Assembly (NCBI RefSeq): GCF_000143415.4
Contig: NW_003314334.1
Location: forward strand, 248,001-312,000
Source: Selaginella moellendorffii
Taxonomy: Eukaryota; Plantae; Lycopodiophyta
DNA: 64,000 nucleotides
Direction of reading: 5' to 3'
Under the pieces are notes generated by a model. That model was not told where the DNA came from, made no database searches, and saw only the letters and a list, made by a program, of their open reading frames with translations. The position numbers and the translations under genes are program-made. This document shows positions 22,251-54,621 of the stretch, piece by piece. Within the stretch, counting starts at the first letter, position 1. Every line of letters begins with the position of its first letter.

Positions 22251-22259
22251 TTTAAATGC

Positions 22260-28450: not shown

Positions 28451-28489
28451 TCTTAGAAAAGGTAGATTTAGATATGGAATGTTCTAAAC

Positions 28490-30714: not shown

Positions 30715-30729
30715 GGCTCGGTGTCTCAA

Positions 30730-32045: not shown

Positions 32046-32884
32046 CTAGACAGGCAGAGCGATACCCCCTGCAGCGCAGAGATCAGCTCCGGTGTTGCGA
32101 TCGTAGAGACTGCAGCCCTCTTTCATGTCCTCGCAGCTGCGGCGTGCATTCCTGCAAGACTGCAGGGTGGTGCCCTGAAAAGTTACAGACTTGGCACAAA
32201 TGGACACTCTGGGCAGGCAAACGAGGGCGCAAACCCCCATGGGGTCTTCAGTAGGCAGGCAGGTGCTGTTTGCGGATGGATTCTCCAAGTAGATGCAACC
32301 GGATTTCCCGAAGCAGCAACCACAGTTATCTTTGGAGACCTCGGCATTGCAGACCTCCACAATCGAATCAAGCTTACACTTCCTTCCTGCCATGAGCTCT
32401 ATCGGAGAGGGCTGAGCTTCCTGAACATAATGAACAAGGCGGTTACCTTGATCTGTGCCCTGCTGCTCCAGCCGCGGGATGGGGTCACCGTTAACGATGT
32501 TGTAGTAACCGCATCCAGGTTGTCGGGGTGGGAGTTTTCCCTTGAGCACCTTGATGCCTGATGTTGGGAATCCTGATGAAGGCAATGGGCATACGGCCAA
32601 CTTCGGACCTTGGCACTCCCGGGTACAAGCCCTTGAATCACCGCCAATGCAAGTGACTTGTCCTGAACCAGGTTGCAGATAGACACAACCTTTCTTCAGA
32701 CTACAGCAGTTGCTGCAATCGGTATAGGTGAGGTCACCATTGCAAACCTCGACGACACCACCTTGAGCAGCTGCAAGAACAGGAGTCCGAGTTAGAATCG
32801 AACATACAAGTGGAGATCTCTCTCACAGGATAACGAGGCCAACAGAAGAAGAACGAGCACGGGGAGATTGCCGCTTCCAGCCAT
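32046..32884 (-). CDS. Pin-II-like inhibitor gene (copy 2, P1 Arg)
   Basis: Same structure as 20022-20860. Confidence 0.75.
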
Positions 32885-34247
32885 ACTTCTCTATTGCAGA
32901 TCTGATGGGCTTTTGAAGTCCAGCATTGGTGCTTTAGAAATGTTCAAAACGTGTGTCCTTGACACAATGGATATCTTAATGCAGTAAGATAAGCCCTCTC
33001 ACCACGGATGTGACGGGCGAGCTGAATGTCCTTTGGCAATGCCAAAGGACATCTAATGCCAAATTGGCATTAGATAGTGGCTTGCTTTGCGAAGATTCAC
33101 CGGTAAAATGCGGGAACAATGCCCAGTCTCAGCACAAAAACAAATATCAGCTCCAGTGTTGCAAACGTAGAGATTGCAGCCCTCTTTCATGTCCTCGCAG
33201 CTGCGGCGTGCATTCCTGCAAGACTGCAGGGTGGTGCCCTGAAAAGTTACAGACTTGGCACAAATGGACACTCTGGGCAGGCAAACGAGGGCGCAAACCC
33301 CCATGGGGTCTTCAGTAGGCAGGCAGGTGCTGTTTGCGGATGGATTCTCCAAGTAGATGCAACCGGATTTCCCGAAGCAGCAACCACAGTTATCTTTGGA
33401 GACCTCGGCATTGCAGACCTCCACAATCGAATCAAGCTTACACTTCCTTCCTGCCATGAGCTCTATCGGAGAGGGCTGAGCTTCCTGAACATAATGAACA
33501 AGGCGGTTACCTTGATCTGTGCCCTGCTGCTCCAGCCGCGGGATGGGGTCACCGTTAACGATGTTGTAGTAACCGCATCCAGGTTGTCGGGGTGGGAGTT
33601 TTCCCTTGAGCACCTTGATGCCTGATGTTGGGAATCCTGATGAAGGCAATGGGCATACGGCCAACTTCGGACCTTGGCACTCCCGGGTACAAGCCCTTGA
33701 ATCACCGCCAATGCAAGTGACTTGTCCTGAACCAGGTTGCAGATAGACACAACCTTTCTTCAGACTACAGCAGTTGCTGCAATCGGTATAGGTGAGGTCA
33801 CCATTGCAAACCTCGACGACACCACCTTGAGCAGCTGCAAGAACAGGAGTCCGAGTTAGAATCGAACATACAAGTGGAGATCTCTCTCACAGGATAACGA
33901 GGCCAACAGAAGAAGAACGAGCACGGGGAGATTGCCGCTTCCAGCCATACTTCTCTATTGCAGATCTGATGGGCTTTTGAAGTCCAGCATTGGTGCTTTA
34001 GAAATGTTCAAAACGTGTGTCCTTGACACAATGGATATCTTAATGCAGTAAGATAAGCCCTCTCACCACGGATGTGACGGGCGAGCTGAATGTCCTTTGG
34101 CAATGCCAAAGGACATCTAATGCCAAATTGGCATTAGATAGTGGCTTGCTTTGCGAAGATTCACCGGTAAAATGCGGGAACAATGCCCAGTCTCAGCACA
34201 AAAACAAATATCAGCTCCAGTGTTGCAAACGTAGAGATTGCAGCCCT
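32111..34247. repeat. 1064-bp direct tandem duplication
   Basis: TGCAGCCCT anchors at 32111, 33175 and 34239. Confidence 0.9.
33053..33948 (-). CDS. Chimeric Pin-II-like gene (copy 3) with a substituted C-terminus
   Basis: Same N-terminus; after EGC the frame runs into upstream-derived sequence (NLYVCNTGADICF...MPIWH*). Confidence 0.55.
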
Positions 34248-36412
34248 TGATAGAATGAGCGGACCGAAGCTGGAGAGCCTAGGCCTGAAAAACGATCAGG
34301 CACGGTTGCAAGGGTGCAGGGTAACAAGTTGCATACGGTGGCAATTTATTTTGGAAAAATGCTCGTCTCGACCATTTTGATTTTTTATATTCATTTTCTG
34401 TTGTCACATATATTGTCTGTATTGAAAACATATATGCCACTAGCAACCCTTGTACCAGGGGTGCTACCCCGATCGATTTTTTGCTCTTAGGTAGGGAAAG
34501 CTGGATTACTCCTGTGTTGAGAGCTCATAAAATAGAGTAAATGGCAGCATCTGTTAGAACTAAGCTGAACATGCACACAACCAAGGCAGGTAGCTCACTG
34601 GTAGAGCACCTGGCACCGGTGTAGGAGGTCCTGCCTGTCCAGCCATTTTCCAACGGCATCCATCCCTCCAGCTGGCTGAAAGTTTGGATCCCAGGACCAT
34701 TTTGCACTAACAATGCAAACTTTAATTGAACCAGGCCATGGGGAAGAGTCAACCATTGAACCCAATCATGATCAATAACAAGGACTCGACGCAAAGAGTT
34801 TCTTCAATTCTCATATTGGTGTTGGTATAGTGGTTCACATTGAGTTGGTAGCTTCCCAGACAACTTGTTTGGTTGCTGCTAAAGTTCCTTGATGGAACAC
34901 TGCCTTCAAACCTGTTGTTGGTCGCATTGGAGCTGAAATTTTTGGAAGGCTCACCCGAGAAGATGGCCTCCCAGTTTGTTGGAGTTTAACAGAAGTATGC
35001 TCGGAAAGCTGAGAGGAATGCTGCCTTGTAGGTGACTAATATCTGTCGAATCTCAGGAGAGCTGAACAAGCTAGAAGCAGTTAGAGAGTTCCTAATCCCT
35101 GCAAGCTGGAATAGTTGGTTTATGAATATCTATCAAATCCATCAAATCCAATGCACCTTCACTGAAAATGTCAACACAGTGAGCCATTTCCTCCAAACAC
35201 AGTAGGTGTAATGGGACCAATGTCGTACTTGGCACTGTCCATAAACCATGGCTACAACAAAATAGCAATCGTTGGCATTGCTTTGGCTTGTACATGTGAT
35301 CTGAAATATGTCCTGCCAGCCCACGAGAGAACGAGCTTTTTAAATGCTTGAAAACGTTTACTGTTTGGAACGTACATAGGATGAAGTTATCGCCTCTGAC
35401 GGTGAATCCAAAGCCCTCTCTCCAGATTGTCGCGAGTTTTACAAGTTCCCAGCAAGACACAACCTCACTGGCTGGACGAATCCAGAGCATGGCCCGTGGT
35501 GATTCGGCCTCTTTTGTTTTGCGTGGTTTACTCCCAAAGCCGGAGATCAACTTTCATGCTGGGATGCTGGCCGGTGTAACCTTGGGGACGGTGTCTGGTG
35601 ACGAGTTATTGCAGGGGCCGAGCCTGACCGAATCAACTGGTAAGCTAGAAGTTTTTTTCGTATTTACGTATTCGCTGACTGATACTTTATTCCAGCGGCT
35701 TCGACATGGTCCGTAGCCAACGCCACGGCATTTGGACAGTGGATACAGAGCAGAGGCTCCATCTCTCCCGTTGCATCCGGCTACGTCATCTCCGGCCCGA
35801 CCACAGCTCTACGAGCCGAGGTTGTTCATGTTTCCATGGAGGAGGAATGGCCGAGGACGCTCCAGAACGGTCTCGTAGCACACTTCGGCTCCTCCAAGGC
35901 TCGAGACAGGAGATGCAAGGGATGCGTCTGGGTGGGAATGGCTTGTGTGACAACGCCGGTAGTAGCAGCAGTGTGGGCACAGGGAAGCCAGGGAGCAGCA
36001 GCGGCATCAAGCTGCAAATCCGCTACGTTCTAGAGCAACTTGGAGCGGAATTTTATGGCCTCTCGTGGCTGACCATCAGTCCCATGTATCTCCACCGGCA
36101 TCCAGTGCTGCCTTACCACTGCGGCGTAGTGCTGCGGCTGGAGAAGCTACTGTATTACCCGAAGGCACCACCGCCGCCGCCGCCGCCGCCGCCGTTATGA
36201 TTATGTACATACGATGTTTAAAACGACAGTATAAATATACGTATTCTTATTAAGCAAAGGGAAGATTAAAAAAAAAGAGTTTAGCCTTTGTTCGTTAACC
36301 ATCTCTTCTTTGTTGAGCATACAATTGCGGACTCAAGGGGCTCTTTTCCAGACGTATCACGCTAAACCAGTTAAAGACCGATTGATGCTTAACCTCACAG
36401 CAATGCACAGCC

Positions 36413-37740
36413 GGGACACAGGGTGGAGTGCCCAAGACGATGGGCTTACTCAAAAGGAAGTACCATTGGCCAGATATGGTTAAGGACGTCCAAGACTATG
36501 TAAAGACATGTCCAACATGTCAGCAGGTAAAAGCCGTGACTAAGGCTAGTGGGGGCTTGTTGCAAAGCATCCGAATTCCAGATCGCCCGTGGAAATGTCT
36601 TACGATGGACTTCATCACGGGACTCCCCCCAAGCGAGGGGTTTGATGCGATATTTGTGGTGGTGGATCGATTTTCGAAAATGGCACACTTCATACCCACC
36701 ACAACGGAGGTGGATGCGGAAGGTGTGGCAAAGCTGTTCTTCGAACAAGTGGTTCGAGTGCGGGGAAGACCGGAAGAGATCATCTCAGATCGAGATAAGA
36801 TCTTCACCAGTAGGTTCTGGAAGACTCTCCTAGAACAGTATCACACCAAGTTGAAATTTAGCACAGCCTATCACCCACAGACAGGTATGGGGTATTGAGT
36901 CAAGTTGTTGGCACTAACACTTCTTGACAGACGGACAAACGGAAAGGGTGAATAGGCAACTGGAGGATTATTTGCGATGCTATGTCTCGGGAGACCAGAC
37001 TGATTGGGTAAGTCATTTGGGACTTGCAGAAATGTGTTATAACAACTCACCACATTCGAGTATCGGGGTGAGTCCATGGGAAGTCATCAATGGGCGAGCT
37101 ATTGAAGGTCCTGTGGAACTCGGCGTGGCCGAGTATCATGGAGAGTTGCCCGCAGTGGAGGCATTCACGGCGGAAAGACTCCGCATTTGGAATCTAGTGA
37201 GGGATTCCTTGGAACGGGCTCAACAAAGGCAAACCAAATACGCGAACCAGAAGCGTCGGGATGTAGAGTTCCAAGCTGGGGAGAAGGTGTGGCTGAACAC
37301 CAAGAACCTCAGACTACCAAGTGGGATCAGCCGAAAGTTGACCCAAAGGTAAAGATGCATGTATTCCTGTAAATGAATTGATCTTGAGTTCCTTAAGCAG
37401 GTTCGCGGGGCTTTACGAGATTGAGGCACGAATCGGTAAAGTGGCTTACCGACTCCGACTTCCTCGAGAGATGGGGAAGATGCACCCAGTGTTCCACGTG
37501 AACTTACTCAAGCCGTACTTTGAGGATCCGCTTCGCAAGGACCAAGTGAGACCTTTACCTGAGGTTATCCAAGGGGAAGAGGAATACGAAGTCGAGGCCA
37601 TCCTCAATGCGCGCAAGAGCAAGTAACAAGGACGCGAGGTGAGAGAGTTCCATGTGAAGTGGAAAGGATTTCCACACTGCGAAGCAACATGGGAACCGGA
37701 GATCTAGTGGAGGAATTTCTGCAAGGCAGAACTCTATGTA
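36413..37740 (+). pseudogene. Integrase-chromodomain fragment with two GT-AG introns (36885-36930, 37349-37400)
   Basis: Splicing restores TAYHPQT-D-GQTERVN and KLTQ-R-FAGLYEI; the chromodomain has a 22-bp deletion. Confidence 0.85.
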
Positions 37741-38249
37741 CTTATGCAAAATTCAATTAAAAATATCAATTTGCAAAGTTGAGCAAGTGGCATATGTTGG
37801 GACCCGAAGGCGCGCCAAAGGTAAGCTAATTAGCATAGGTTGGATAGGTCGACCAGGCGTAGGGCACTACGCCCGACTCCCCGCGGGGATGTCGAATTCG
37901 TAGACGTATTCTACGGAGGTTGGGTTTGAGTCCCAACCCCCTAGTAAAGCAAGGCTGGGTTCAAGTCCCGACCCCATACTAGGGCGTGGTGAGGTGAGGA
38001 GTATAGGGACACCTATATTCCGTTGTCATGGGCTTTTGGCCGGGGAGGCTAACTTAGGCACACCGCTAAGTGGGGGGATGCCCCCGGAGACATGGTCAAC
38101 AAGTCGTAGGATAAAACGAGACGTTCGATGTGGGCATCGAACTTCTTCTATGGGTGGTGGAGTTGTAAGGAACCGACTCCCCGAGATGTCGTAGGCTAAA
38201 GGATCCCCAAAAGCTTGACCGAAATGACAAAGAGTTCATCGAATGGGAC

Positions 38250-38520
38250 CAAGTCGAGGATCGAGTCCAAGACCGACTCTAGGACCGAGTTCGAGATAGA
38301 GTCCGGAATCGAGTCCGAGACCGACTCGGGGACCGAGTTCGAGACCGAGTTCGAGACCGAGTTCGAGACGGAGTCCGAGATCCGAAATCAGGTCCGAGAC
38401 CGAGTCCGAGGTCGAGTCCGAGGTCGGGTCCGAGATCGGGTCCGAGATCGAGTCCGAGATCGAGTTCGAGACCGAATCCGAAGTCGGATCCGAAATCGGG
38501 TCTGAGATCGAGCCAGAGAC
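38250..38520 (+). repeat. Degenerate 6-bp tandem array (YCGAGW)n inside the LTR (also ~44215-44485)
   Basis: CCGAGT/TCGAGA/CCGAGA units; produces spurious RD/ET low-complexity ORFs. Confidence 0.9.
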
Positions 38521-38532
38521 TAAGTCCAAATA

Positions 38533-39088
38533 TGTAGCGCATGTGATCATGGGATGAGATTTGGATATACTGTCACCGTGGATCCTTGGAACCTTGGGAG
38601 ATAAATGGGGATAAAATAGCCACTAAGGGCTCTCTCATCAAGCAATTGCCCCTTTTCCAGTTGGCTTAAGGGGAGAGAGATAAGGTGCGCTACAGTTGGT
38701 ATCGGAGCAAATGGCACGGGTTCGATTCCCATTGATTAGTGGCTACTTAAAAAGTATAATATACCCTTGAGCAAGGTATATTCCTACCCCTAAAATTTGA
38801 AATCGAACGTATTGGGCTTCCATGCGTACGTCCTTCCTCTTGTGTGGAGTATCCACGGACGAAGGTATCCACCGTGGGACTGCGGTACGGGTGGATGACT
38901 AGTTGCCTCACATGGAATCATTAGTCTACAAAATGGAAGGATTGGTAGATTGAGTGCGGAAATGGAGGTGTTGGTTCCCCTTGGCTCAGTAGGGGTTGTT
39001 AGTCAATAGTCAATGAGGACATTGACATCTCTAAAGGGGGGGTGAGTGTAGCGCATGTGATCATGGGATAAGTTTTGGATATACTGTG
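38533..39088 (+). mobile_element. TRIM-like miniature LTR element, 3' LTR truncated
   Basis: 162-bp LTR TGTAGCGCA...TGCGCTACA (38533-38694); PBS 38697-38708; ~350-bp non-coding interior; PPT; second LTR starts at 39047 and matches for only ~40 bp. Confidence 0.8.
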
Positions 39089-39419
39089 ATAGGCTTGGTG
39101 TGCTTGGCTGCTTGTGCTTGCGGGGAGTGTAGCCGAACCTTAAGTCCCGTCTAACCCGGGGAGGGGGATTGGGAGAGATTTGGGAATCCGTAGATGGATG
39201 GCTAACACTCCGTTGCTCGTGTAGTGAGTAGCTGAAACCAAGTAGGACCAAGTACCATAGGCGAGAACCTTGGCGAGGGAACTTAGCACAAGCCAAGGCA
39301 GAGTTGGTCGGATAGCCGAGGTAAGCTGGCAAATTGGAAAGGAAAAATTTGTGGCTTACAATTTGGTATCGGAGCCTCTTCCTCAGTTCTAGCGAAGGAT
39401 AGAGGCGGATTGCTGGGAG

Positions 39420-42400
39420 ATGGCAAGGGCAGGACGTAAGCGAACCCAGGCGGAGACGGAACCTCCTCCAGAGCTGGAGCCTCCGGTCGAACAGGAGGCT
39501 ATGGATGAGGAATCGTTGCATGAGGAGGACTCCAGTGAGGCAACTTCCAAACAGGAGTCCGGTGGTGAGGTTCGATCGTCCAAGGCTCGATTGGACGTTC
39601 TAGAAGGACAATTGGCACAGACCAATGCCCTGCTAGAGACTCTCGTACGCAAGCTAAAGCGTGATGAGAAGCGGAAGAAAAAGTGAAAGACTGCGGATGC
39701 TGGCAGCGCAGAAGGTGCGGACCCTTCGGCAGGGATTGAGGCAAAAACAGACAAGGTCGAACAGACCGAAGTGGAATCAGTCCCTCAGGCAGTTCCCAAG
39801 TACAAACCGAAGCCCCCACCGGTCTTCAAGGGAGTGAACGACTATAAGGTGGTGGAGGATTGGTTTTACGATATGGAGGACTACTTCTGAGCGTTGCGAT
39901 TACCGAGCTCGGAGAAGGTCCCATATGCTAAACCATACTTGGCAGATAATGCCAAGTCTTGGTGGAGAACAACGGAGGCCAACGAAGGACCGGTGGCCAC
40001 TTGGGAAATGATGAAGGCGAGGATCCGCGCAACTTACGTTCCTCCGAATGCTACTCTGCACCTAAGGGACGAGCTGAGTAGGCTGAAGCAGACCGGAACC
40101 ATTCAGGAGTATGTGAATGGGTTTATGGCAAAGAGGATACTTGTCACGGACATGGGGGATATGGATGCGTTACATGCCTTCATATCAGGTTTGCAAACCT
40201 GGGCTCGCGGCGAAGTAATGCGATGGAACCTGACCAACTATAAGGAAGCGTTGGATGCGGCCATCAAGGTGCATTTCAACAATAACCTCGGATAATTTTG
40301 TGGCTGCAGACATAGTCCGGCAAGCCGGACTAACGGTGCAGCGGCTAGGCAAACCAAGGACTATAGAGTTTGTTCAAGGTAGCCAAAGCACCGATGAGGT
40401 ACTTCGACAAGCGAGAGTCGAAGTGGGGACTTGGAAGGTGGACATGGATTTCACCGTGTTGGACATGGTGGGATTTGACGTGATCTTCAGAATGGACTGG
40501 TTCAATCGATTCGTGGTAGCCCTGCATGGACAAGGTAGAAACCTTGTGGTACTGGCGAATGCCCAAGGAAGAAGATCTAGGGTGGAGGCCCAAGATCTAA
40601 AGGTAGGGCAAAGCAAGGCCAAAGATTCCTGCTTAAACTTGGTGTCCACGAGAGGACAACTCACTAAAGGAACTAAGGCGGCCTTTTTGTGCTTACTCTC
40701 GGTGAAGAGTGACAAAAAGACAGGAATGGAAGAAGTACCTTTAGTGATCCAGCGGGTGTTGGACTAATTCCAGGATACCATGCCGGAGGAGCTACCGGCG
40801 GGGCTACCCCTAGCACGACCGATAGAACATAAGATTGAGCTGGTCGAGGGTGCTGAGGCAGTGGTTCGTCCCCCTTATCGTTTGAACGAAAAGGAACTCA
40901 AGGAGCTCAAGTGCCAACTAGAGGAGTTGGTGGACAAAGGGTATGTTAGGTTGAGCAAGTCGCCGTATGGGGCGCCGGTGTTATTTGTGAAAAAAAAAGA
41001 TGGATCTATGCGCATGTGCATAGACTACCGGTTGCTCAACAAGTATACAAAGAAGAACAAGTACCCTTTGCCAAGGATTGAGGACCTGTTCGATAGGTTG
41101 GGAAAGGCAAAATACTTCTCGAGGATTAACCTAAGGTCAGGATACTACCAGATCAAGGTAGCCGAGGAAGATGTCGAGAAGACAACCTGTCGAACGAGGT
41201 ATGGGAGCTTTGAGTTTCTGGTAATGCCCTTCGGGCTATGTAATGCGCCGGCAACGTTTTCGGCGCTAATGAACCACATCTTTGTACCCTATCTGGATCA
41301 CTTCGTGGTCGTCTATATCGACGACATCCTGATCTATAGCGAGACGCTAGAGGAGCATGTCGAACACTTGGCGAAGGTGTTTGAGAAACTAAGGGAACAC
41401 AAGCTGTATGCTAAAGAGAGCAAATGTGACTTTGCTCAACAAGAGGTAAAGTTTCTCGGGCATGTGGTGGGCCAGGACGGGCTCAAGGTGGACCTGGAGA
41501 AGGTCCAAGCGATCCAGGAATGGGAGCGACCATCCAATGTACACGAGTTGAGGGCATTCCTGGGGCTATGCAACTACTATCAAAAGTTTATCAGACACTA
41601 TTCGAGAGTAGCCCTGCCCTTAATGGACCAAACAGGAAAAGGGAAGATGGTGTGGACAGCGGAATGCGAGGCGGCATTCGTCCACCTCAAGGGGAAGTTG
41701 AGGAAGGCTCCCGTATTGGCATTACCAGACTTTGGTAAGGACTTTGAGGTAGAAATGAATGCTTTGGACTTTACGTTGGGTGCAGTTTTGAAGCAAGACA
41801 ACCATCCGGTAGCGTTCTTCTCGAAGAAGCTGGACAAGGCTCAACGGAAGTGGCCTGCCCACGAGAAGGAATTGTTTGCAGTGGTCAAGGCGCTCAAGGA
41901 GTGGCGACACTACCTTGGGAGACACTTCAAGGTTTACACGGACAATGTGGCAACGAAACACTTCTTGTCACAGCCCGACCTAAGAGGGAAACAAGGTCGG
42001 TGGGCCAATGCCTTGGCCGAGTTTGATTGCGAAATTCTGTACAAGCCTGGGAAGAGCAACATCGTGGCGGATGCGCTAAGTCGAAAAGCAAGCTTGAGGT
42101 TGGCAATATCCAGCGCAACAGCAACCTTCTGGGACGATGTGCGGATAGCATATGAGAACGATGGTCTAGCACAGGAAGTGTTGCTGAGGAATCTAGAGGC
42201 GCGGGAAGCTCACCAGAGAGGTGAGCTGCCAACGGAAGAGAAATCGGGCTATGCGGAACGCAACAGACTCATTTATTACAAGCAAATGAGGGTGTATATT
42301 CCAGAAGGGGAACTAAGGAAGGTGGCCTTAGAAGAGTGTCATGACAGACCTCTTGCGGGACACGGTGGAGTGCCCAAGACGATGGGCTTACTCAAAAGGA

Positions 42401-43700
42401 AGTACCATTGGCCAGATATGGTTAAGGACGTCCAAGACTATGTAAAGACATGTCCAACATGTCAGCAGGTAAAAGCCGTGACTAAGGCTAGTGGGGGCTT
42501 GTTGCAAAGCATCTGAATTCCAGATCGCCCGTGGAAATGTCTTACGATGGACTTCATCACGGGACTCCCCCCAAGCGAGGGGTTTGATGCGATATTTGTG
42601 GTGGTGGACCGATTTTCGAAAATGGCACACTTCATACCCACCACAACGGAGGTGGATGCGGAAGGTGTGGCAAAGCTGTTCTTCGAACAAGTGGTTCGAG
42701 TGCGGGGAAGACCGGAAGAGATCATCTCAGATCGAGATAAGATCTTCACTAGTAGGTTCTGGAGGACTCTCCTAGAACAGTATCGCACCAAGTTGAAATT
42801 CAGCACAGCCTATCACCCACAGACAGGTATGGGGTATTGAGTCAAGTTGTTGGCACTAACACTTCTTGACAGACGGACAAACGGAAAGGGTGAATAGGCA
42901 GCTGGAGGATTATTTGCGATGCTATGTCTCGGGAGACCAGACCGATTGTGTAAGTCATTTGGGACTTGCAGAAATGTGTTATAACAACTCACCACATTCG
43001 AGTATCGGGGTGAGTCTATGGGAAGTCATCAATGGGCGAGCTATTGAAGGTCCTGTGGAACTCGGCGTGGCCGAGTATCATGGAGAGTTGCCCGCAGTGG
43101 AGGCATTCACGGCGGAAAGACTCAGCATTTGGAATCTAGTGAGGGATTCTTTGGAATGGGCTCAACAAAGGCAAACCAAATACGCGAACCAGAAGCGTCG
43201 GGATGTAGAGTTCCAAGCTGGGGAGAAGGTGTGGCTGAACACCAAGAACCTCAGACTACCAAGTGGGATCAGCCGAAAGTTGACCCAAAGGTAAAGATGC
43301 ATGTATTCCTGTAAATGAATTGATCTTGAGTTCCTTAAGCAGGTTCACGGGGCTTTACGAGATTGAGGCACGAATCGGTAAAGTGGCTTACCGACTCCAA
43401 CTTCCTCGAGAGATGGGGAAGATGCACCCAGTGTTCCACGTGAACTTACTCAAGCCGTACTTTGAGGATCCGCTTCGCAAGGACCAAGTGAGACCTTTAC
43501 CTGAGGTTATCCAAGGGGAAGAAGAATACGAAGTCGAGGCCATCCTCAATGCGCGCAAGAGCAAGTAACAAGGACACGAGATGAGAGAGTTCCATGTGAA
43601 GTGGAAAGGATTTCCACACTGCGAAGCAACATGGGAACCGGAGGAGAACCTAGCGAACGCGCGAGATCTAGTGGAGGAATTTCTGCAAGGCAGAACTCTA
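39420..43700 (+). pseudogene. gag-pol polyprotein, defective, with integrase introns 42827-42872 and 43291-43342
   Basis: In-frame stops at ~39684, ~39888, ~40765, ~42514, ~43566. A deletion near 40285 removes the gag C-terminus and protease catalytic motif. RT/RH ORF at 40780-42516. Confidence 0.9.
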
Positions 43701-44127
43701 TGTACTTATGCAAAATTCAATTAAAAATATCAATTTGCAAAGTTGAGCAAGTGGCATATGTTGGGACCCGAAGGCGCGCCAAAGGTAAGCTAATTAGCAT
43801 GGGTTGGATAGGTCGACTAGGCGTAGGGCACTACGCCCGACTCCCCGTGGGGATGTCGAATCCGTAGACATATTCTACGGAGGTTGGGTTTGAGTCCCAA
43901 CCCCCTAGTAAAGCAAGGCTAGGTTCAAGTCCCGACCCCATACTAGGGCGTGGTGAGGTGAGGAGTATAGGGACACCTATATTCCGTTGTCATGGGCTCT
44001 TGGCCGGGGAGGCTAACTTAGGCACACCGCTAAGTGGGGGGATGCCCCCGGAGACATGGTCAACAAGTCGTAGGATAAAACGAGATGTTTGATGTGGGCA
44101 TCGAACTTCTTCTATGGGTGGTGGAGT

Positions 44128-44496
44128 TGTAAGGAACCGACTCCCCGAGATGTCATAGGCTAAAGGATCCCCAAAAGCTTGACCGAAATGACAAAGAGTT
44201 CATCGAATGGGACCAAGTCGAGGATCGAGTCCAAGACTGACTTTAGGACCGAGTTCGAGATAGAGTCCGGAATCGAGTCCGAGACCGACTCGGGGACCGA
44301 GTTCGAGTCCGAGTTCGAGACCGAGTTCGAGACGGAGTCCGAGATCCGAAATCGGGTCCGAGACCGAGTCTGAGGTCGAGTCCGAGGTCGGGTCCGAGAT
44401 CAGGTCCGAGATCGAGTCCGAGATCGAGTTCGAGACCGAATCCGAAGTCGGATCCGAAATCGGGTCTAAGATCGAGCCAGAGACTAAGTCCAAATA
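44128..44496 (+). repeat. Truncated 3' LTR
   Basis: TGTAAGG after the PPT; ends at CAAATA and is fused to inverted host sequence. Confidence 0.85.
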
Positions 44497-46712
44497 GCCC
44501 CTTGAGTCCGCGATTGTATGCTCAACAAAGAAGAGATGGTTAACGAACAAAGGTTAAACTCTTTTTTTTTAATCTTCCCTTTGCTTAATAAGAATACGTA
44601 TATTTATACTGTCGTTTTAAACATCGTATGTACATAATCATAACGGCGGCAGCGGCGGTGGTGCCTTCGGGTAATACAGTAGCTTCTCCAGCCGCAGCAC
44701 TACGCCGCAGTGGTAAGGCAGCACTGGATGCCGGTGGAGATACATGGGACTGATGGTCAGCCACGAGAGGCCATAAAATTCCGCTCCAAGTTGCTCTAGA
44801 ACGTAGCGGATTTGCAGCTTGATGCCGCTGCTGCTCCCTGGCTTCCCTGTGCCCACACTGCTGCTACTACCGGCGTTGTCACACAAGCCATTCCCACCCA
44901 GACGCATCCCTTGCATCTCCTGTCTCGAGCCTTGGAGGAGCCGAAGTGTGCTACGAGACCGTTCTGGAGTGTCCTCGGCCATTCCTCCTCCATGGAAACA
45001 TGAACAACCTCGGCTCGTAGAGCTGTGGTCGGGCCGGAGATGACGTAGCCGGATGCAATGGGAGAGATGGAGCCTCTGCTCTGTATCCACTGTCCAAATG
45101 CCGTGGCGTTGGCTACGGACCATGTCGAAGCCGCTGGAATAAAGTATCAGTCAGCGAATACGTAAATACGAAAAAAACTTCTAGCTTACCAGTTGATTCG
45201 GTCAGGCTCGGCCCCTGCAATAACTCGTCACCAGACACCGTCCCCAAGGTTACACCGGCCAGCATCCCAGCATGAAAGTTGATCTCCGGCTTTGGGAGTA
45301 AACCACGCAAAACAAAAGAGGCCGAATCACCACGGGCCATGCTCTGGATTCGTCCAGCCAGTGAGGTTGTGTCTTGCTGGGAACTTGTAAAACTCGCGAC
45401 AATCTGGAGAGAGGGCTTTGGATTCACCGTCAGAGGCGATAACTTCATCCTATGTACGTTCCAAACAGTAAACGTTTTCAAGCATTTAAAAAGCTCGTTC
45501 TCTCGTGGGCTGGCAGGACATATTTCAGATCACATGTACAAGCCAAAGCAATGCCAACGATTGCTATTTTGTTGTAGCCATGGTTTATGGACAGTGCCAA
45601 GTACGACATTGGTCCCATTACACCTACTGTGTTTGGAGGAAATGGCTCACTGTGTTGACATTTTCAGTGAAGGTGCATTGGATTTGATGGATTTGATAGA
45701 TATTCATAAACCAACTATTCCAGCTTGCAGGGATTAGGAACTCTCTAACTGCTTCTAGCTTGTTCAGCTCTCCTGAGATTCGGCAGATATTAGTCACCTA
45801 CAAGGCAGCATTCCTCTCAGCTTTCCGAGCATACTTCTGTTAAACTCCAACAAACTGGGAGGCCATCTTCTCGGGTGAGCCTTCCAAAAATTTCAGCTCC
45901 AATGCGACCAACAACAGGTTTGAAGGCAGTGTTCCATCAAGGAACTTTAGCAGCAACCAAACAAGTTGTCTGGGAAGCTACCAACTCAATGTGAACCACT
46001 GTACCAACACCAATATGAGAATTGAAGAAACTCTTTGCGTCGAGTCCTTGTTATTGATCATGCTTGGGTTCAATGGTTGACTCTTCCCCATGGCCTGGTT
46101 CAATTAAAGTTTGCATTGTTAGTGCAAAATGGTCCTGGGATCCAAACTTTCAGCCAGCTGGAGGGATGGATGCTGTTGGAAAATGGCTGGACAGGCAGGA
46201 CCTCCTACACCGGTGCCAGGTGCTCTACCAGTGAGCTACCTGCCTTGGTTGTGTGCATATTCAGCTTCGTTCTAACAGATGCTGCCATTTACTCTATTTT
46301 ATGAGCTCTCAACACAGGAGTAATCCAGCTTTCCCTACCTAAGAGCAAAAAATCGATCGGGGTAGCACCCCTGGTACAAGGGTTGCTAGTGGCATATATG
46401 TTTTCAATACAGACAATATATGTGACAACAGAAAATGAATATAAAAAATCAAAATGGTCGAGACGAGCATTTTTCCAAAATAAATTGCCACCGTATGCAA
46501 CTTGTTACCCTGCACCCTTGCAACCGTGCCTGATCGTTTTTCAGGCCTAGGCTCTCCAGCTTCGGTCCGCTCATTCTATCAAGGGCTGCAATCTCTACGT
46601 TTGCTGAACGTGTATGTACATTCCCCATGTCCCAATGGGACTAATACAAAAAATGGGCGTGCCGCCCTCTCCATGAGCTACTCTACGTGATCCTCATATG
46701 CCGCAGCTAGAC

Positions 46713-49700
46713 CTAGTCCTGGAGTAGAAGTGGACGTGGTCGTCTCGAGCGAATCATGTCGATGTCCAAGTCTCCCCCACGAGCTGACCTTAGAACAGAG
46801 TCTGGGGGGCGCCATTGCCAGCGAATCTCGCCACCTCCCAATTTGCCGAAGCATGGGAGCCACCTGGATCTCCACTCCTCGAGCTGCCTCGGTTTCGCCC
46901 GCTCTTTCAGGATGGTGTAGTGAAGACGCACCGCTGCAAGAGTGAGTCTCCACCATGATGCCACCACTGCCGATATTCTCGCTTGTTGCCCATCAAAGCG
47001 ACAGTGGTTCCGCGCCTCCCAAAGTGCCTGCAGTCCTGTTGCCCTCCAAATGGACCAGCGCTCTTGGCCCAACGCCTCCCAGATGGACATCCCAACTTCA
47101 GCCCCTGTCACGTCCCACCGGACTCGCATGTTCCATCGGTGCCGTCCGTAGCAGCGAATACGCCTCCAAGCTGGACCAATGGCTGGGCCTCTGGCTCCCT
47201 CAAACCAGTGGAGGATATCCCCACTCCGAGCCTCGAACTCTGGAATGTCTCCGAGTTCCTGCGTCGCCTTGAAGATCTGTCGCCAAACTTCTCTCGCCAC
47301 GTCGCATTCCCATAGGACATGTTGCGCTGTCTCCAACTCGCCACACTCCTTGCACCGTCGGCATGCTTCTTCCTGGAACCGCTGTCCTACCGGCAGCCCG
47401 TTATTTGCCACCAACCAAGAGGTGGCCTTGACTTTCTCCTGTACCGGTAGTTTCCAGAACGCAAGCGTGTTGCCCACCACCTGATTTGCTTCAACTCCTT
47501 GCTTGATCCATTTCTTCCAGAGCTTGGGGATCTCCCCTCGGGCCTCCTCCCTGCTGGTCAAGAGACCATCCCTTGCTTCCTTGACGCCGAAGGAGAAGAA
47601 GCTCCTCGCTCCTCGTTTCCATGCTGCGGGGTCCCAATCCAGATCCTCGATGAGCTGCTGTCGCCACCATCTAAGAATGCCTTCCCCTTCTAGTGCAGCC
47701 AACGATTGAACCACCACCGATTGTTTCGGAGCCTGTCGTATTACTCGAATCCTACCCTTGACCTCGTCATCCGTCACCATCGGCATGACCTGTTCGTCCC
47801 CTGCTGGCAACAGCATGTCGCCTCTCAAGACTCGAAAAGGACGCCCAACATTTTGGTCTGGAGACACAACGAACCATACCTCCACATCCCTGTCCTCCCA
47901 AGCTGGTGTTGGGGCCGTAAACGCCCGTGTCCAGGCCCCCAAGCTAACTCGTTCCCTGTCTGACTCCACGTCCCGTTGCAGAGCCACAAAGTCTCCAGAT
48001 TTGAGACAACGCCTAGGCCAGAGCTGCCCCTGCTTCGCCTCACTCACTGCTCTGATAATGCGAAGAAGATCAAGGTGGACTTTCCTCCACCGTCCCGGGT
48101 TAAAGACCTGCATATGTCTCGTAGTCTTCCTCCTGTCCTTGTCCAGAACCCGCACCAGCTGCTTGAGAGTTCGGAAGCCTGCGCTATGTAGCTTTCTCCA
48201 GATTGTGTAGTGGTCCTCCCTGCCCAGTGTCCTATCGTCCAGTTTGAAGAGGTCGTTGAAGAACAGGGGCTGGTTCAGCCAGTCCTCCGCTCGCCCTGGC
48301 AATTCCCTACTGACTGGAAACGCGCTCCATAACCGGAGAAGCCCCTGGACTAGAGTGCCGCCCTTGACTACTTGCTTCGGCCCCTCGGCAAAGAGCCAAC
48401 GTGGATCTTCTTCCCACGGTCTTGCAGTGTTGTGCTTGGGCCGGATTGCCAACAAGTTCTGCCTAAACATGAGTCTCCAAGGTTGATTACCTGGTTGAAG
48501 GCCCATGAGGAGGATTTTGTACCGTAGCGCCTTCGCCATGTCACTCGGATCGATTACTCCAAGTCCTCCCAAGACTCGCGGACGTGCTGTAGATTGCCAC
48601 GCGACCTTGGCCATGCTCCTCCCTGTGACCAGAGCGCCCCGCCACAAATACTGACGGACCATCGTGCGTACCTTTCTAAGAGTGCGTTCTGGAACAGGCC
48701 AGATGGAGAGGTGGTACCAGATGCCAGGCAGAATGATGCTCCTAGCGACTACCACTCTCGCTGGCAAGCCGAGTTTCCGGGGAGCCCACTTCTGGATTGA
48801 CGTTCGTACCCGTCGGAGCAAGGTGTCATCCTGAAGTGCTGCACTGAACCGAGTACCAACCTGGATCCCCAGGTACCTAGCGTCTTCTCCTGGTTTGAGC
48901 CACTGGAAGCCAATGTCCTGCCCCCAAGATTCGATGCCTGGTCGCCCCCAATTTATGCCCACTGATTTGTTCCAGTTAATTGCTGCACCAGCCGCGAGGT
49001 TGAACGTCTCCAGCGCCTTCTTAGCTGCATCCATGTTCTCCTTAGTCGCAAGTAGGAACAAGGCAGTGTCGTCCGCAAAAGCACCATCAAGGAGTTCCCG
49101 AGACACCCTTGTGGTTCCCGGAAGTTGCTGTCTCGCAGCCGGCAGTGTGAGTCCTTTAATGCGTCCGCCTTCCGCTAGAAACGTACCCAGGGCCTCAGCC
49201 ACAATCAGAAAAAGATAGGGTGCTAGTGGACACCCTTGGCGTACTGAACGTCCCAGCTGGAAACTCGGTCCCGTCTCGCCATTGATTGTGACTCTGCTTG
49301 TGGCTCCTCGGTATAGTAACGAGATCCTAGTGACCATCTCTCTCGGGATGCCGATCGTGTTCATGCACTCCTCTAGGAACCTCCAGTCCACCCGATCGTA
49401 GGCCTTCTCGAAGTCCAAAAGCCATGCTGCAGTTTGTTGGTTAGAGATCTCTGCCCATCTCTGAGCCAGCAGGTACGTCCAGATGTTTTCTGCGATTTGC
49501 CGCCCTGGAACAAACCCTGTCTGCTGCTCCCGGATGATCAGCGGCATGACAGCTTGGAGCTTGAGGGTCATTGCTTTGGCATAGACCTTGTAGGACGTGT
49601 TGAGCATGGTGATTGGCCTCCAATTCTTCAGCTCCTGCAGGTCCCCCCTCTTTGGAATAAGCGCAATCTGGCCCTCAAGGATCTCGCGAGGCAAGGTCCC

Positions 49701-51215
49701 ATCACGTTGAGCATCCCACCATGCTTGTAGCAGCAGCGGGCCTATGGTCTCCCAGTGCTCCTCGAAGAAAATGGGCAAGAGGCCATCGATACCTGGCTGC
49801 TTGTCGTTGCTGAGCTTCCCGAGCGCTTCCCGAAGCTCCTCCAGTGTGAGGTCCGTCTTCAGTGAGTCGTGCCACTCATGGGGGACTCGCTGGGGAAGGG
49901 ACGCAAGCACTTCCACCGCCGCCCTTTCCCTCTCTGGAGTCCACTGCTGGGCCGTATATAGAAGTTGGTAAAACTCCTGGGCGAGCTGTTGCATCCCCTG
50001 TTGGTCCTCGATGACTCGCCCGTCACTGTGCTTCAGTCCTAGAATGGGAGGAGAGTCCGTCACTGGCCTGATTCCCCTAAAGAAAGCCTTGTTGAGAAGG
50101 CGTTCATTCAGGGCCCATCCATCTTCCATGGCCCGGACGCCCTTGCTCCATGCAGCGTACTCCATGTCACGTAGCTCGGCTTCACGTTCATCCAGTATTG
50201 TTTGCCACTTGAGCTCATCTTGCGTGTTCAGCAACATCCTGTGTGCTGCTGCGACCTTCTTCCTGGCCAGTCTAAGGTCCTTCATCACCACCCCTTTGAG
50301 ATCCTTCTGGCGCGCCCGGAGCTTCTGTGAGCAAGACAAGAGCACAGGGATCAGTCCCAGCTTGTTCTGCGCAAGGGCGTCATGTATAAGCCCAATTGCC
50401 ACCGGGTCTCGCAGCGTGGCTCTAGTGATTGATCGCTGGACCGCTGTCCCTTTGTCCCTTTGGAGCTGGATCACGCATCTGAGGGGGTCGTGATCTGAGA
50501 AGGAGGCAAATCCCAGCCACGTTTTTAGGCTTCCCCCATCCTGCCGTATGCGAGACGAGGCGTAAATCCGGTCCAGTCTCGACTGGGAGGATACTGTCTG
50601 TCGCCTTGTAAAAGGGTGAGCATGAGGTGCGAATCCCGCAGCATGCTGGAGGTCCATGAGCCCCAGTATGTCCATGAGCTGACTCCACTGCTTCTGTTCA
50701 CGTGGCTGAATTGTTTCCTGCATACCCCTGCGATCGCAGACGTCCTCGACCATGTTGAAATCTCCCAGGACCAGCCATTCATCTGCTTGCCCCTGTGCAG
50801 ACTGTAACACACTCAGCCAGAATTCTGCACGTCTCCCTTTCTTCGTTGGTGCATAGACGTTGATTATCCCCACCCGTCCAAAGTGGAGGTGAAGGACAAG
50901 CAATTGAGCCTTTCCTGGGACGAGAACAAGGTGGTTTCGTACCTGAGCAGACCATTTGGTTGAGACTACCACTGCTGTGCCCCCTCCTGGTCTGGCCACT
51001 GCTTGCGTGGCCGGGTTCCACCAGAGCCGTCCCCTCATTCCAAAGGTGTAGTCTGGGGCCACAGTCATTTTGTGCTCTTGCAAGCATAGGATGTCGATAT
51101 CTCCTTCTAAGCTGATCTCTCGGATGTGGGACTTGAGCTGCGCCCTTTTGTTGAGTCGACTGCCGGTCCAGCTGAGTCCCCGGCAGTTCCAGGTGACGAG
51201 CGTGAGAGTTGTCAT
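46713..51215 (-). CDS. LINE ORF2: AP endonuclease, reverse transcriptase and C-terminal CCHC (zf-RVT) region, ~1500 aa
   Basis: TWNCRGL, LCLQE, GDFN, SRLDR, SDH; WRPITMLN, DFEKAYD, RQGCPLAP, FADD; CRRC..ETAQHVLWEC. Confidence 0.95.
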   Translation of the reverse strand: MTTLTLVTWNCRGLSWTGSRLNKRAQLKSHIREISLEGDIDILCLQEHKMTVAPDYTFGMRGRLWWNPATQAVARPGGGTAVVVSTKWSAQVRNHLVLVPGKAQLLVLHLHFGRVGIINVYAPTKKGRRAEFWLSVLQSAQGQADEWLVLGDFNMVEDVCDRRGMQETIQPREQKQWSQLMDILGLMDLQHAAGFAPHAHPFTRRQTVSSQSRLDRIYASSRIRQDGGSLKTWLGFASFSDHDPLRCVIQLQRDKGTAVQRSITRATLRDPVAIGLIHDALAQNKLGLIPVLLSCSQKLRARQKDLKGVVMKDLRLARKKVAAAHRMLLNTQDELKWQTILDEREAELRDMEYAAWSKGVRAMEDGWALNERLLNKAFFRGIRPVTDSPPILGLKHSDGRVIEDQQGMQQLAQEFYQLLYTAQQWTPERERAAVEVLASLPQRVPHEWHDSLKTDLTLEELREALGKLSNDKQPGIDGLLPIFFEEHWETIGPLLLQAWWDAQRDGTLPREILEGQIALIPKRGDLQELKNWRPITMLNTSYKVYAKAMTLKLQAVMPLIIREQQTGFVPGRQIAENIWTYLLAQRWAEISNQQTAAWLLDFEKAYDRVDWRFLEECMNTIGIPREMVTRISLLYRGATSRVTINGETGPSFQLGRSVRQGCPLAPYLFLIVAEALGTFLAEGGRIKGLTLPAARQQLPGTTRVSRELLDGAFADDTALFLLATKENMDAAKKALETFNLAAGAAINWNKSVGINWGRPGIESWGQDIGFQWLKPGEDARYLGIQVGTRFSAALQDDTLLRRVRTSIQKWAPRKLGLPARVVVARSIILPGIWYHLSIWPVPERTLRKVRTMVRQYLWRGALVTGRSMAKVAWQSTARPRVLGGLGVIDPSDMAKALRYKILLMGLQPGNQPWRLMFRQNLLAIRPKHNTARPWEEDPRWLFAEGPKQVVKGGTLVQGLLRLWSAFPVSRELPGRAEDWLNQPLFFNDLFKLDDRTLGREDHYTIWRKLHSAGFRTLKQLVRVLDKDRRKTTRHMQVFNPGRWRKVHLDLLRIIRAVSEAKQGQLWPRRCLKSGDFVALQRDVESDRERVSLGAWTRAFTAPTPAWEDRDVEVWFVVSPDQNVGRPFRVLRGDMLLPAGDEQVMPMVTDDEVKGRIRVIRQAPKQSVVVQSLAALEGEGILRWWRQQLIEDLDWDPAAWKRGARSFFSFGVKEARDGLLTSREEARGEIPKLWKKWIKQGVEANQVVGNTLAFWKLPVQEKVKATSWLVANNGLPVGQRFQEEACRRCKECGELETAQHVLWECDVAREVWRQIFKATQELGDIPEFEARSGDILHWFEGARGPAIGPAWRRIRCYGRHRWNMRVRWDVTGAEVGMSIWEALGQERWSIWRATGLQALWEARNHCRFDGQQARISAVVASWWRLTLAAVRLHYTILKERAKPRQLEEWRSRWLPCFGKLGGGEIRWQWRPPDSVLRSARGGDLDIDMIRSRRPRPLLLQD

Positions 51216-54200
51216 GGAGCCACGTACTTCCAAGAAAGTGAGGAGTTACGGGGTCTCGCCCTCCATTCTGTGGAGATGGTCCACACCGCAGTCATCTTCC
51301 CCCTGTGCTTCGTCCAGGAGAAGCCTCGGACAGTGTACTTCGCAAAGCCCGTCCACTCAGTGATAGCACTCTCCATGCGTGTGTGGTAGTCTCCAATAGT
51401 GACGACCTCTGGGAAGGCTGTGTTCCCGCGGCACATCAGCCAGTCTCCCGCCTCTGTGGGACTTAATTCCCGCTTAGGGGGAATCCACCTGACCGCCATT
51501 CCTACTGTTCGAGGGAGGACCGGCTGGAAGCCATCTCCTTCGACATCCGTAATAGGTCCCTCGAACAGTTTGGGCTGTGAGGATGAGCCCAAGAGTGGTG
51601 GGGCGACCGGGAAGCGAATGTGGGGAGCTTGGTCCGGAGGGCGTGCCTTCAAGATCCGCTCCTGCTCTGCAGGTAACTCAAACGGCTTCTGGGATGCCAA
51701 CCTGTTCCGCTTGACTGAGCAGGCCTCCTCCCGGTGTCCAGCGCGCTGGCAAAAGTTGCATCTAGGTTCTGAGTTCTCCGTTTGGATCCTGATATACTGG
51801 CCCAGCACTGCGATCTCTGTCGGGATTTCAGCCGGGGCTGACACGAAAACTTTGAGACGGATGGGACCTAGCACACCCTCTGCTTCTACAGTGTCGAGGC
51901 CGGCCGCTATCTGGCCAATACTTCCTTCAACCAGCTCCTGTATCACCGGTGTGATCCGCATTTCCATGGGAACGTCCCACAATGCAATGTTCACTGGAAA
52001 GCTCCCGCCCTTGAGACGAGCCTGGTCCTCTGCGGTGAACCTTGGGATCCATGGGTGGAATGACACCGCCCAATTCTCGTCAATGAGGCCATGCATGGCC
52101 TCCGCCTGAGACCGTGCCTCCTCTGTCTCAAAGACAACTGTGTAGCAGCCCTTCCCATGCGGCAGCATCTTCTTCATGAGGATTCCCTGGCCCAGCGTTG
52201 CATTGATCCAATCGTTAGCCATGCGACCTGTTGGGAACTTCCCCCTGAAAACAGCAATCAGTGCCTTCTTGCGGAGTTCCTCTTCCTTCTCTGCTACTGC
52301 TCTTTGCAGAGTCTCAGCCAGCTTGACAGGGACGGCCTTTCCTCTCGTGTCGTCGTGGACCAAGTGACTTCCACCTTCCCCTACTGCTGCCACCTTGTGC
52401 TCTTCGGCCTGACCATGTGTTCCCTCGTTCACTTTATGTGAGGTGTACTCCTTGTTAGCATCACTGTTCCCGTCCGAGGAGTGCAGCGCTTCTACCACCT
52501 TTCCGCAGCCCCGAGTCTTCCTCGCTCTCGACTGGGCTTTTGCCACTCGCTCCGGGGTGTCAACCTCCTGGTGCTGGTACGCCCGAGACTCTGTTCTCTT
52601 GTCTGGCAGGGCGTGCTCCTCCTCAAGGAAGGCTTCAACTGTGTTTGTCCAGGCTGGGTCCTCCTTGGCAAGTCTCAGAGTTTTAAGCTTCCGCCGCGTT
52701 GCTCGCTTCACTTTCTTCTTCTCACGCTTGGTCTTCCTCTTGTTGAAGGCATCGCGGTCCTGGAACTGAAGTGTACCATCTGACTGTTCCTCCAGTGAGC
52801 ACTCCGTTTCTGGCTCTGTTTCTGGCTCTCCGAGTCCCACTTCAACTGTTGGTGTTGGCGTGGTAGCCACTTTGCCACCTTGTTCTTGCGCCCATGCATC
52901 GAAGAGGTCCGCTTGCTGTGTGGCCACTGCCTTCGTGATTATCCCTTGAGCTTCACGCAGTGCAGGGCCCAACACGAGGTCCTCTCCCAAAGGACTCAGA
53001 TCCAGCTCTCTGATCGTGCACATCAGGGTTGACTGGAGTTCTTTGCGTACGGGAAGCGGAGAACTTTGGATCCTTTCCTCAAAGTGGTGGGGGTCCCAGA
53101 CCAGCCTCCCTGCCTTGTCGAGTCGTGGGAGTGGAGAGGGAAGCGACTCCTTCTGCTCCTCGTGTGGTGTTGTGGGAGAGTCCGGATCTGATTTCCTCAC
53201 TTGTTGTAAGTGCGCAGGGTCCACCTGGTGTGTTTCCTCCTGTACTCTTGCATGTACTAGATCAGGGATGAGCCCGGCCACGTCTGTAGGAGTTTCTGGG
53301 TGGGACAGGGGGTTCCCACCAGCTGGGCATGAACTTGACGCATTCCCGTAAGCAGGGAGTGTGCCAGCTGCGCAGTCCTTCCGAGTCTTAAGGTTCTCTG
53401 TTAGAATTGCGAGAGCTGCACGACGTGCATCCCACAGAGAGATGTTCCCCACGTCTTCCCCCTCATCCAGTTGGTGAGTTAGCTGCGAGACTTCATGCTG
53501 GATTCGCTGTGCTGACTCTCGACACACCTGTTCCGTGAACTGCTCACTGTTCCAAAAGACTATACCACCGCTTGCAGGCTTCGGCAAGAACAAGTGCAGA
53601 CAATCTGTGCTATCTCCACCCTGACTCAAGTCCATGCAGCGCCTCGTCACTGGAGGCTGTGGGCTGGATCGGGGCCTCACACTTGAGGAACGAGCTGGTG
53701 AAGATGGGAGTGAAGCTCTGGGCTTGTTTGTCAGGTCCGACAAGCATCTGTGGGCAAACTTCAGTGTCCGAAGAAGCGGCTCCTTGTTCTGTCCTAGGAC
53801 CACGGCTGAACGGTCTGGCTCTCTAGAGATCTCCTGGCCTGGTTGTGCCTCTGAATGGGGGATTGTGAACTCACCTTCTAGTGAGGCCTCCATGTTGAGC
53901 CTGCAAGACAGAAGTGCATCGTCCTGTTCCCCTCTATTTTTGGACGTTCTGGGTGGGGCAGACTTGAGTTCTCCTGTCCCACGTCCTGGCTTGGCTGCTG
54001 CTGCACGTGCTGCTGCTCTGGTGGTGACCCCTGCCCTGACCCTGGTGTGCCGCTCCTGTACTTCTGTGAGACATCCAACCCTGTGAATCCCTTCAACGGC
54101 GAAAGTGTTTGGGATAAATCCCCGCAAGCCTTCCTGACTTGTAACTGACCCGAGACCCTCACGAAGCTCCTGGACTCCAGCCAGTGCCCAAGCAAGTGGG

Positions 54201-54244: not shown

Positions 54245-54621
54245 CTCGTCTCTGGCTTGGCTTTTACTTCCAGCTTGTTCCAGGACCTGTCCATCCCCCA
54301 GCCCTGAAACATCCACCACTTCTATCCCGCAATCTCTACGTTTGCAACACTGGAGCTGATATTTGTTTTTGTGCTGAGACTGGGCATTGTTCCCGCATTT
54401 TACCGGTGAATCTTCGCAAAGCAAGCCACTATCTAATGCCAATTTGGCATTAGATGTCCTTTGGCATTGCCAAAGGACATTCAGCTCGCCCGTCACATCC
54501 GTGGTGAGAGGGCTTATCTTACTGCATTAAGATATCCATTGTGTCAAGGACACACGTTTTGAACATTTCTAAAGCACCAATGCTGGACTTCAAAAGCCCA
54601 TCAGATCTGCAATAGAGAAGT

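Follow-up and report, generated by a model that had tools for sequence, protein, structure and literature searches.

A decayed and truncated tandem copy of a high-copy spikemoss chromovirus lies in the 64,000-nucleotide stretch of Selaginella moellendorffii DNA analyzed here (the window). Our preferred reading, which we regard as probable, is that the family carries two genuine introns fixed in its integrase gene and that a minority of its transcripts is spliced to provide integrase. We conclude that the introns are real and family-wide and that proof at the RNA level exists for intron 2 alone.

The main copy in the window (copy B) has two inserts in its integrase gene, and inspection of the sequence together with its three-frame translation bore out the original observation that both have GT..AG ends, are 3n+1 nucleotides long and contain stops (Table 1). 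Intron 1 has the borders CAG/GTATGG...GCACTAAC...TTGACAG/AC, with a branch-point-like CTAAC 14 nt ahead of its 3′ end, and it separates TAYHPQT (frame 2) from GQTERVN (frame 0) by splitting an Asp codon as G/AC. Intron 2 has the borders AAG/GTAAAG...TTAAGCAG/GT and separates KLTQ from FTGLYEI, which is read in the third frame, by splitting an Arg codon as AG/G. The pol frame of copy B is open from 40768 to a TGA at 42514, and it resumes at 42517 to reach TAYHPQT at 42825. Reading through into intron 1 meets a TGA at 42838, four codons in, and reading through into intron 2 meets a TAA at 43292, right behind the split codon. Exon 2, between the introns, is 418 nt long. Each intron string occurs once more in the 64-kb window, at 36885 and at 37349. 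Introns of plants are richer in A+T and in T than are exons, and the inserts, at 57% and 65% A+T and 33-35% T, compare with exons at 50% A+T and 21% T. Judged by sequence, the identification of both inserts as canonical U2-type introns is supported.

Table 1. Features of the tandem element in the window (positions are those of the window)
Feature	Position	Strand	Description
Copy A	36412..37795	+	3′ fragment of internal region, from integrase zinc-finger end to chromodomain
Intron 1 of copy A	36885-36930	+	exact string match to 42827-42872
Intron 2 of copy A	37349-37400	+	exact string match to 43291-43342
Shared LTR (3′ LTR of copy A, 5′ LTR of copy B)	37795..38694	+	putative boundaries
PBS-like site, TGGTATCGGAGC (tRNA-Met type)	38697..38708	+	second identical motif at 39364-39375
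gag (Retrotrans_gag)	39501..40262	+	in-frame stops at 39684 and 39888
Protease, C-terminal part alone	40273..40764	+	RVP_2 profile 42-130 of 136; stop at 40765
RT, RNase H and integrase H2C2 zinc finger	40768..42513	+	Pfam RVT_1, RT_RNaseH_2, Integrase_H2C2; one 582-aa open stretch ended by TGA at 42514
Integrase core, end of exon 1	42517..42826	+	both catalytic Asp residues; TAYHPQT and first base of split Asp codon
Intron 1 (copy B)	42827-42872	+	46 nt, GT..AG, phase 1, 57% A+T
Exon 2	42873..43290	+	catalytic Glu (GQTER), rest of core, first part of SH3-like domain
Intron 2 (copy B)	43291-43342	+	52 nt, GT..AG, phase 2, 65% A+T
Exon 3	43343..43724	+	rest of SH3-like/GPY-F domain, chromodomain; natural stop at 43722
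3′ LTR of copy B	43760..44496	+	ends ~200 nt early, where LINE 3′ end begins

To compare the interrupted gene with uninterrupted relatives, the four pieces between the breaks were aligned separately to six continuous polyproteins taken from the database search. In all six, the exon 1 piece ended at a residue n and the exon 2 piece, taken without the split codon, started at n+2, as at reference residues 750/752 in P0007 and 700/702 in P0028. At the junction of exons 2 and 3, residue 136 of exon 2 corresponded to residue 888 of P0007 and exon 3 aligned from residue 892, and in P0168, the closest continuous relative of exon 2, the pieces were likewise separated by one split codon. Removal of the introns restores the frame and the conserved protein exactly with respect to every continuous relative aligned, and the claim that excision restores the canonical motifs thus held, with a single split codon lying between the pieces. 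Domain profiles gave the same picture. Pfam rve matched over positions 2-102 of 102, finishing where exon 1 finishes, and the first residue of exon 3 matched position 24 of SH3_Tf2-1 (24-63 of 64), which indicates that the SH3-like domain is split by intron 2. The catalytic Glu, that of GQTER, lies 36 positions past the second Asp (that of SD in ISDRD) and thus inside exon 2.

GT..AG ends are found in 0.5% of all 40-70 nt segments of copy B pol. Owing to the short repeats at their borders, insert 1 has 6 equivalent placements and insert 2 has 5, and with these allowed for, the joint chance of GT..AG ends for two arbitrary inserts is ~8e-4. The modal intron size of the species is near 50-60 nt. 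Intron sizes of host genes were not readable within the parts of the window examined, where other transposons and repeats are found. The spikemoss is described as short-introned (PMC3141229), and its average intron is 285 bp (PMC5310277).

The borders of the introns contain short repeats. GACAG closes exon 1 (42822-42826) and also closes intron 1 (42868-42872), forming a short direct repeat, and AGGT spans both junctions of intron 2 (43289-43292 and 43341-43344). These repeats could be ordinary proto-splice-site consensus or could be a trace of intron gain. We rejected the possibility that the introns arose when flanking exon sequence was duplicated in tandem, as local alignments did not outscore shuffles in four tests (p 0.04-0.46). 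RNA hairpins serving as a splicing or packaging signal were also rejected, as sequence in and around the introns folded no better than shuffles (z -0.3 to +0.8). Finally, copies A and B differ at 0 of 98 intron nucleotides and at 19 of 1183 exon nucleotides; ~1.6 differences were expected in the introns, and lower divergence of introns than of exons was dismissed as not significant.

The element was identified as a Ty3/gypsy chromovirus, consistent with the gypsy LTR retrotransposon first proposed. Pfam matches, together with tblastn to polyproteins, occurred in the order gag, protease, RT, RNase H and integrase along 39891-43721, and a C-terminal chromodomain was found. Exon 3 matched Chromo over profile positions 17-52 of 53, and the PF00385 Chromo match at 43569-43721 (E 1.3e-12) was broken by a TAA at 43566 that is common to copies A and B. 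The two copies are 97-98% identical and are arranged in the order internal region, LTR, internal region, LTR, and in self-BLAST 36412-38532 matched 42356-44496 at 97.2% identity. The left part of copy A is missing up to 36412, and 22 nt are deleted from its chromodomain. Because the copies stand in tandem through one shared LTR and have the stop at 43566 in common, they are not independent insertions. Thus, the second copy that had been put forward as containing the same inserts does contain identical strings, but it is a 3′ fragment and not an independent insertion.

Copy B is itself decayed. About 145 residues are absent after gag, corresponding to the C-terminal end of Gag and the N-terminal half of the protease, and the active-site part of the protease is therefore missing. 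By the DNA-run table, the stops at 40765 and 42514 are peculiar to copy B, and copy A also differs at 42514. Exon 2 is open throughout in copy B despite five stops elsewhere. The LTR pair is 97% identical and a PBS-like site is present, and both outer ends are truncated, apparently by LINE insertions. At each outer end the element runs into the 3′ end of a LINE, the two LINE ends being inverted relative to each other, so that no target-site duplication is readable. With several stops, no protease active site and truncation at both ends, copy B is, by its sequence, dead.

The surroundings of the tandem are dense in repeats. The block from 36412 to 44496 is flanked by inverted 2.1-kb segments that are 99% identical, at 34225-36346 (+) and 44492-46604 (-). 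The right segment runs on into a LINE with ORFs at 46713-51233 and 51212-54496 (-), one encoding an endonuclease/RT of 1506 aa and the other, upstream of it, 1094 aa, and both ends of the tandem seem to have been removed by two LINE copies. Elsewhere in the window, 1-14651, 17094-36412 and 54329-63849 consist mostly of large direct and inverted repeats of 94-100% identity; for example, 1-3639 matches 11012-14651, and 19807-21159 matches 31831-33183 at 100%. These repeats point to nested transposons and recent segmental duplication.

The ends of the LTRs are less sharply defined than the coding region. The start of the shared LTR is approximate (TG), and its end, ..CA, lies two bases before the PBS-like site. 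The PBS-like motif occurs twice, 667 nt apart and each time two bases past ..ACA, and no tRNA gene was found near either site. A segment of ~35 nt is repeated at 38538-38572 and 39052-39086. In the DNA run described below, contigs continued into unlike sequence past both 38694 and 39360, and several joined 39087 to 38600. The family seems to have variant or duplicated structures of the LTR end and leader, such that the true LTR end is uncertain. The LTR also contains a tandem array in which a 12-nt unit (GAGTCCGAGATC-like) recurs ~28 times over two blocks, and the array lies at 38239-38579 and 44203-44531. The length of this array may be the source of LTR size differences between copies.

The DNA run carrying the same organism label (X1) placed 66,914 short contigs on 38600-44200, which was divided into 30 bins. 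The family is highly repeated, summed depth (a quantity that differs from copy number) being very high in all 30 bins. In the bins with intron 1 and intron 2 the summed depth was 0.89 M and 1.00 M, compared with 0.90-0.96 M for their neighbors; if most copies were devoid of the introns, the intron bins would drop by about a quarter. No intron removal appeared among the best 15 joints listed (depth 179-2,106), a further 72 joints lying outside that list and some being uncounted, and at one position of intron 1 (42846) depth was low, at 0.10 M. We conclude that retention of both introns in DNA by the bulk of the family is supported. Rare intron-less copies, or a genomic copy lacking intron 2 alone, may exist. 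Of the proposed comparison between intron-bearing and precisely intron-less copies, the predominance of the former was seen as depth in X1.

One family that could correspond to the element is SM1-Galahad, described from S. moellendorffii by Novikova, Smyshlyaev and Blinov in 2012 (PMC3350952). SM1-Galahad is present in hundreds of copies of ~95% identity with a tRNA-Met PBS and TG..CA ends, and a 7.5-kb reconstruction was made because no intact copy was found (PMC3350952). In that reconstruction, ORF1 (3885 bp) ends after the core integrase, and of the two short ORFs behind it (316 and 309 bp) the second carries a group I chromodomain; the LTRs are 1076/1146 bp and contain poly-G tracts (PMC3350952). 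The present element resembles SM1-Galahad in host group, domain order, a PBS-like site of the tRNA-Met type, putative TG..CA ends and high copy number. Moreover, both have a long ORF that ends in the integrase core and then two short ORFs. In copy B, ORF1 ends at 42838, inside intron 1, the interval from ATG 42974 to 43291 is 318 nt, and that from ATG 43413 to the last sense codon at 43721 is 309 nt, the length of ORF3 in the published element. Unlike SM1-Galahad, the LTR here is ~900 nt if it ends at 38694, a boundary that is uncertain, and no poly-G tract or long run of G was seen in the LTR of the present copy. The family is most likely SM1-Galahad, an assignment made from architecture.

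The words intron and splicing are absent from the SM1-Galahad paper (PMC3350952), and among the papers we searched there was no report of introns in SM1-Galahad or in any chromovirus integrase. As to whether the family had already been described, then, the element matches a published one by architecture, but its introns go unmentioned there. If the breaks are introns, this would explain why no 'intact' copy turned up when SM1-Galahad was described. The sister family SM2-Galahad, a close relative, has hundreds of copies, a group I chromodomain and one intact, uninterrupted ORF of 4731 bp (PMC3350952). SM2-Galahad has no introns in its integrase, and it is the obvious intron-less family for comparison and could have provided integrase in trans. 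Searches for other copies of the family were negative within their reach: a protein search with exon 2 gave nothing at E<=1e-10, one with RT-RNase H gave a best identity of 59%, HMMER over all libraries with exon 2 gave at best 49% (mainly Haematococcus and Logan contigs), a metagenome scan gave distant relatives only and an exact look-up of the exon 2 ORF gave no record.

The inserts could instead belong to a single dead lineage that was duplicated locally and not to the family as such. In favor of this, the copies seen in the window are not independent, being in tandem with a shared LTR, a common stop at 43566 and 97-98% identity. Confinement of the inserts to one dead lineage had been named from the start as something that would refute the proposal, and it is contradicted by X1, in which the insert bins are as deep as their neighbors and no intron-less joint is found among the best 15 listed, and by the published SM1-Galahad reconstruction, which shows matching breaks into three ORFs (PMC3350952). 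Moreover, an RNA-type contig that derives from another copy also bears intron 1 (see below). We conclude that the single-lineage explanation is largely refuted, and we hold it to be very improbable.

RNA evidence came from three runs. Raw RNA-seq runs X24 and X29, each of 9.2 M records, contained 40 and 14 reads of the element. Most of these fell on the leader and some four or five on the integrase, and no junction reached the threshold for listing. We conclude that the family is nearly silent in X24 and X29. Run X15 covered 9 of the 30 bins and is taken to be RNA because DNA of so abundant a repeat could not leave 21 of 30 bins bare. One contig of X15 (record 12; 1291 nt, depth 59) aligned at positions 1-252 to 43592..43341 and at positions 253-748 to 43288..42793, and it skipped exactly 52 nt in a manner equivalent to removal of 43291-43342, that is, of intron 2. 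The same contig retained intron 1, the letters of which were identical to those of copy B, and all six differences in the intron 1 stretch fell outside the intron. There were 14 differences in 748 nt, indicating that the contig came from another copy, and to the left of 42793 it continued into ~540 nt of unrelated sequence. We conclude that record 12 is a chimeric or read-through transcript and not LTR-driven genomic RNA.

The skip in record 12 indicates that intron 2 is spliced out of an RNA made by another copy, the dominant form of which still contains intron 1. Alternatively, the contig may be the transcript of a genomic copy that lacks intron 2 alone. Of the two splice junctions predicted, then, 43290^43343 was seen in one RNA-type contig, intron 1 was retained there, and no junction was listed from raw reads. 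No fully spliced transcript was seen in X15, X24 or X29. Intron 1 is lower in A+T than intron 2 and starts with GTAT rather than GTAA, features that would fit weaker splicing. In both the raw RNA runs and X15, reads also matched the leader segments 38638-38687 and 39091-39185 and nothing more of the leader, and then passed into the same unrelated flanks. These leader-related pieces seem to be exons of some other expressed transcript.

The reading frames dictate what each RNA could encode. Unspliced RNA would give Gag, protease, RT and RNase H, and its integrase would terminate four codons into intron 1, devoid of the catalytic Glu, the SH3-like domain and the chromodomain. That unspliced RNA encodes a dead integrase without a chromodomain, as originally claimed, follows from the frames. 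RNA lacking intron 1 alone would encode a core-complete integrase ending at the border of exon 2, and the full integrase with its chromodomain would be made only from doubly spliced RNA. Because genomic copies keep both introns, the RNA that is reverse transcribed must be unspliced. Integrase would come from a spliced minority of transcripts, on the pattern of Ogre, with spliced RNA either excluded from particles or too rare to leave progeny. A switch in which integrase is gated by splicing and intron-retaining genomes are selected is a plausible but hypothetical model.

One way in which the same copies could arise with no role for splicing in the life cycle is if integrase was disabled by the inserts in one master copy, from which a non-autonomous family then spread through the integrase of an autonomous relative, such as SM2-Galahad; the inserts would still be open to splicing. 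Indeed, no intact SM1-Galahad was found, yet SM2-Galahad has an intact ORF (PMC3350952), and the sole RNA-type contig keeps intron 1, which closes the frame before the catalytic Glu. The lack of fully spliced RNA among the three runs also fits with spread in trans. Two disabling inserts, however, would both need GT..AG ends (~8e-4), intron-like composition and borders that restore the motifs, and the spliceosome recognized the second of them in the X15 contig. Moreover, the published reconstruction leaves exons 2 and 3 open, as ORF2 and ORF3, and exon 2 is open even in decayed copy B. We consider spread of a disabled family unlikely, with somewhat more to be said for it than for the explanation that follows.

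Splicing might also benefit the transcript itself. Splicing suppresses silencing in plants, and silencing there favors intron-less transcripts. The introns could be kept because splicing aids export, expression or escape from silencing, with no gate on integrase dosage, an explanation that is compatible with our preferred one and fits with introns that are tiny and host-like. Plant mRNA export differs between intron-containing and intron-less transcripts, and LTR elements are normally intron-less (PMC12786077). A benefit to the transcript leaves unexplained, however, why both introns sit in integrase, break the frame and bring immediate stops, and we give it a low probability as the reason for intron retention.

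If integrase is gated by splicing as we prefer, the spliced RNA would still keep the PBS, the LTR-derived ends and the leader, which are the usual sites of priming and packaging signals. One candidate explanation for why intron-less progeny are nonetheless absent or very rare, in a family with a very large number of copies, is that the element or the host actively bars RNAs that have passed the spliceosome from reverse transcription. Such a barrier is possible but doubtful; it could operate by keeping junction-marked RNAs out of particles or by drawing genomic RNA from a separate pool of transcripts. Furthermore, copy number might be held down from within by the shortened integrase, devoid of catalytic activity, that unspliced RNA encodes.

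LTR elements of plants as a rule have no introns, Ogre and the alternative splicing of EVADE being the cited exceptions (PMC12786077, PMC6317226). Ogre has an intron inside its polyprotein gene that is spliced in only a subset of transcripts (PMC6317226). Like Ogre, the spikemoss element has spliceosomal introns in the polyprotein gene, would make its upstream proteins from unspliced RNA and the full set from spliced RNA, and keeps its introns in genomic copies. Ogre belongs to a non-chromovirus lineage and has one intron, 274 bp on average, between protease and RT, whereas the spikemoss element has two, of 46 and 52 nt, both within integrase; intron 1 lies four codons before the catalytic Glu and intron 2 lies in the C-terminal SH3-like domain. 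Thus, unlike in Ogre, RT would be made without splicing and integrase alone would be gated.

A division of roles between RNAs has been reported in other elements. BARE draws on different RNA pools for translation and for replication (PMC3735527), and in Cer1 a protein made from spliced mRNA is required for export of the unspliced RNA (PMC10309623). As in EVADE/copia, BARE, Cer1 and retroviruses, spliced and unspliced RNAs of the spikemoss element would differ in role, with the unspliced form as the genome (PMC12786077, PMC3735527, PMC10309623). In those systems, splicing drops large parts of the RNA to give a shorter mRNA encoding gag only, env or an accessory protein, whereas in the spikemoss element splicing would drop two tiny introns and complete a reading frame, and known cis signals would stay. 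With Ogre as precedent and the family itself published, the idea is less novel than it first seemed, although the published breaks had not been read as introns.

Elements copied through RNA should lose introns, and an abundant family that keeps two of them in an essential enzyme poses a clear puzzle: how spliced RNA that is needed for the enzyme stays out of the pool of templates. Ogre posed the same puzzle with one large intron. The spikemoss family is a cleaner natural test than Ogre, as its introns are tiny, its gate concerns integrase only and an intron-less sister resides in the same genome. Moreover, annotation based on open reading frames will misjudge intron-bearing elements of this kind as dead.
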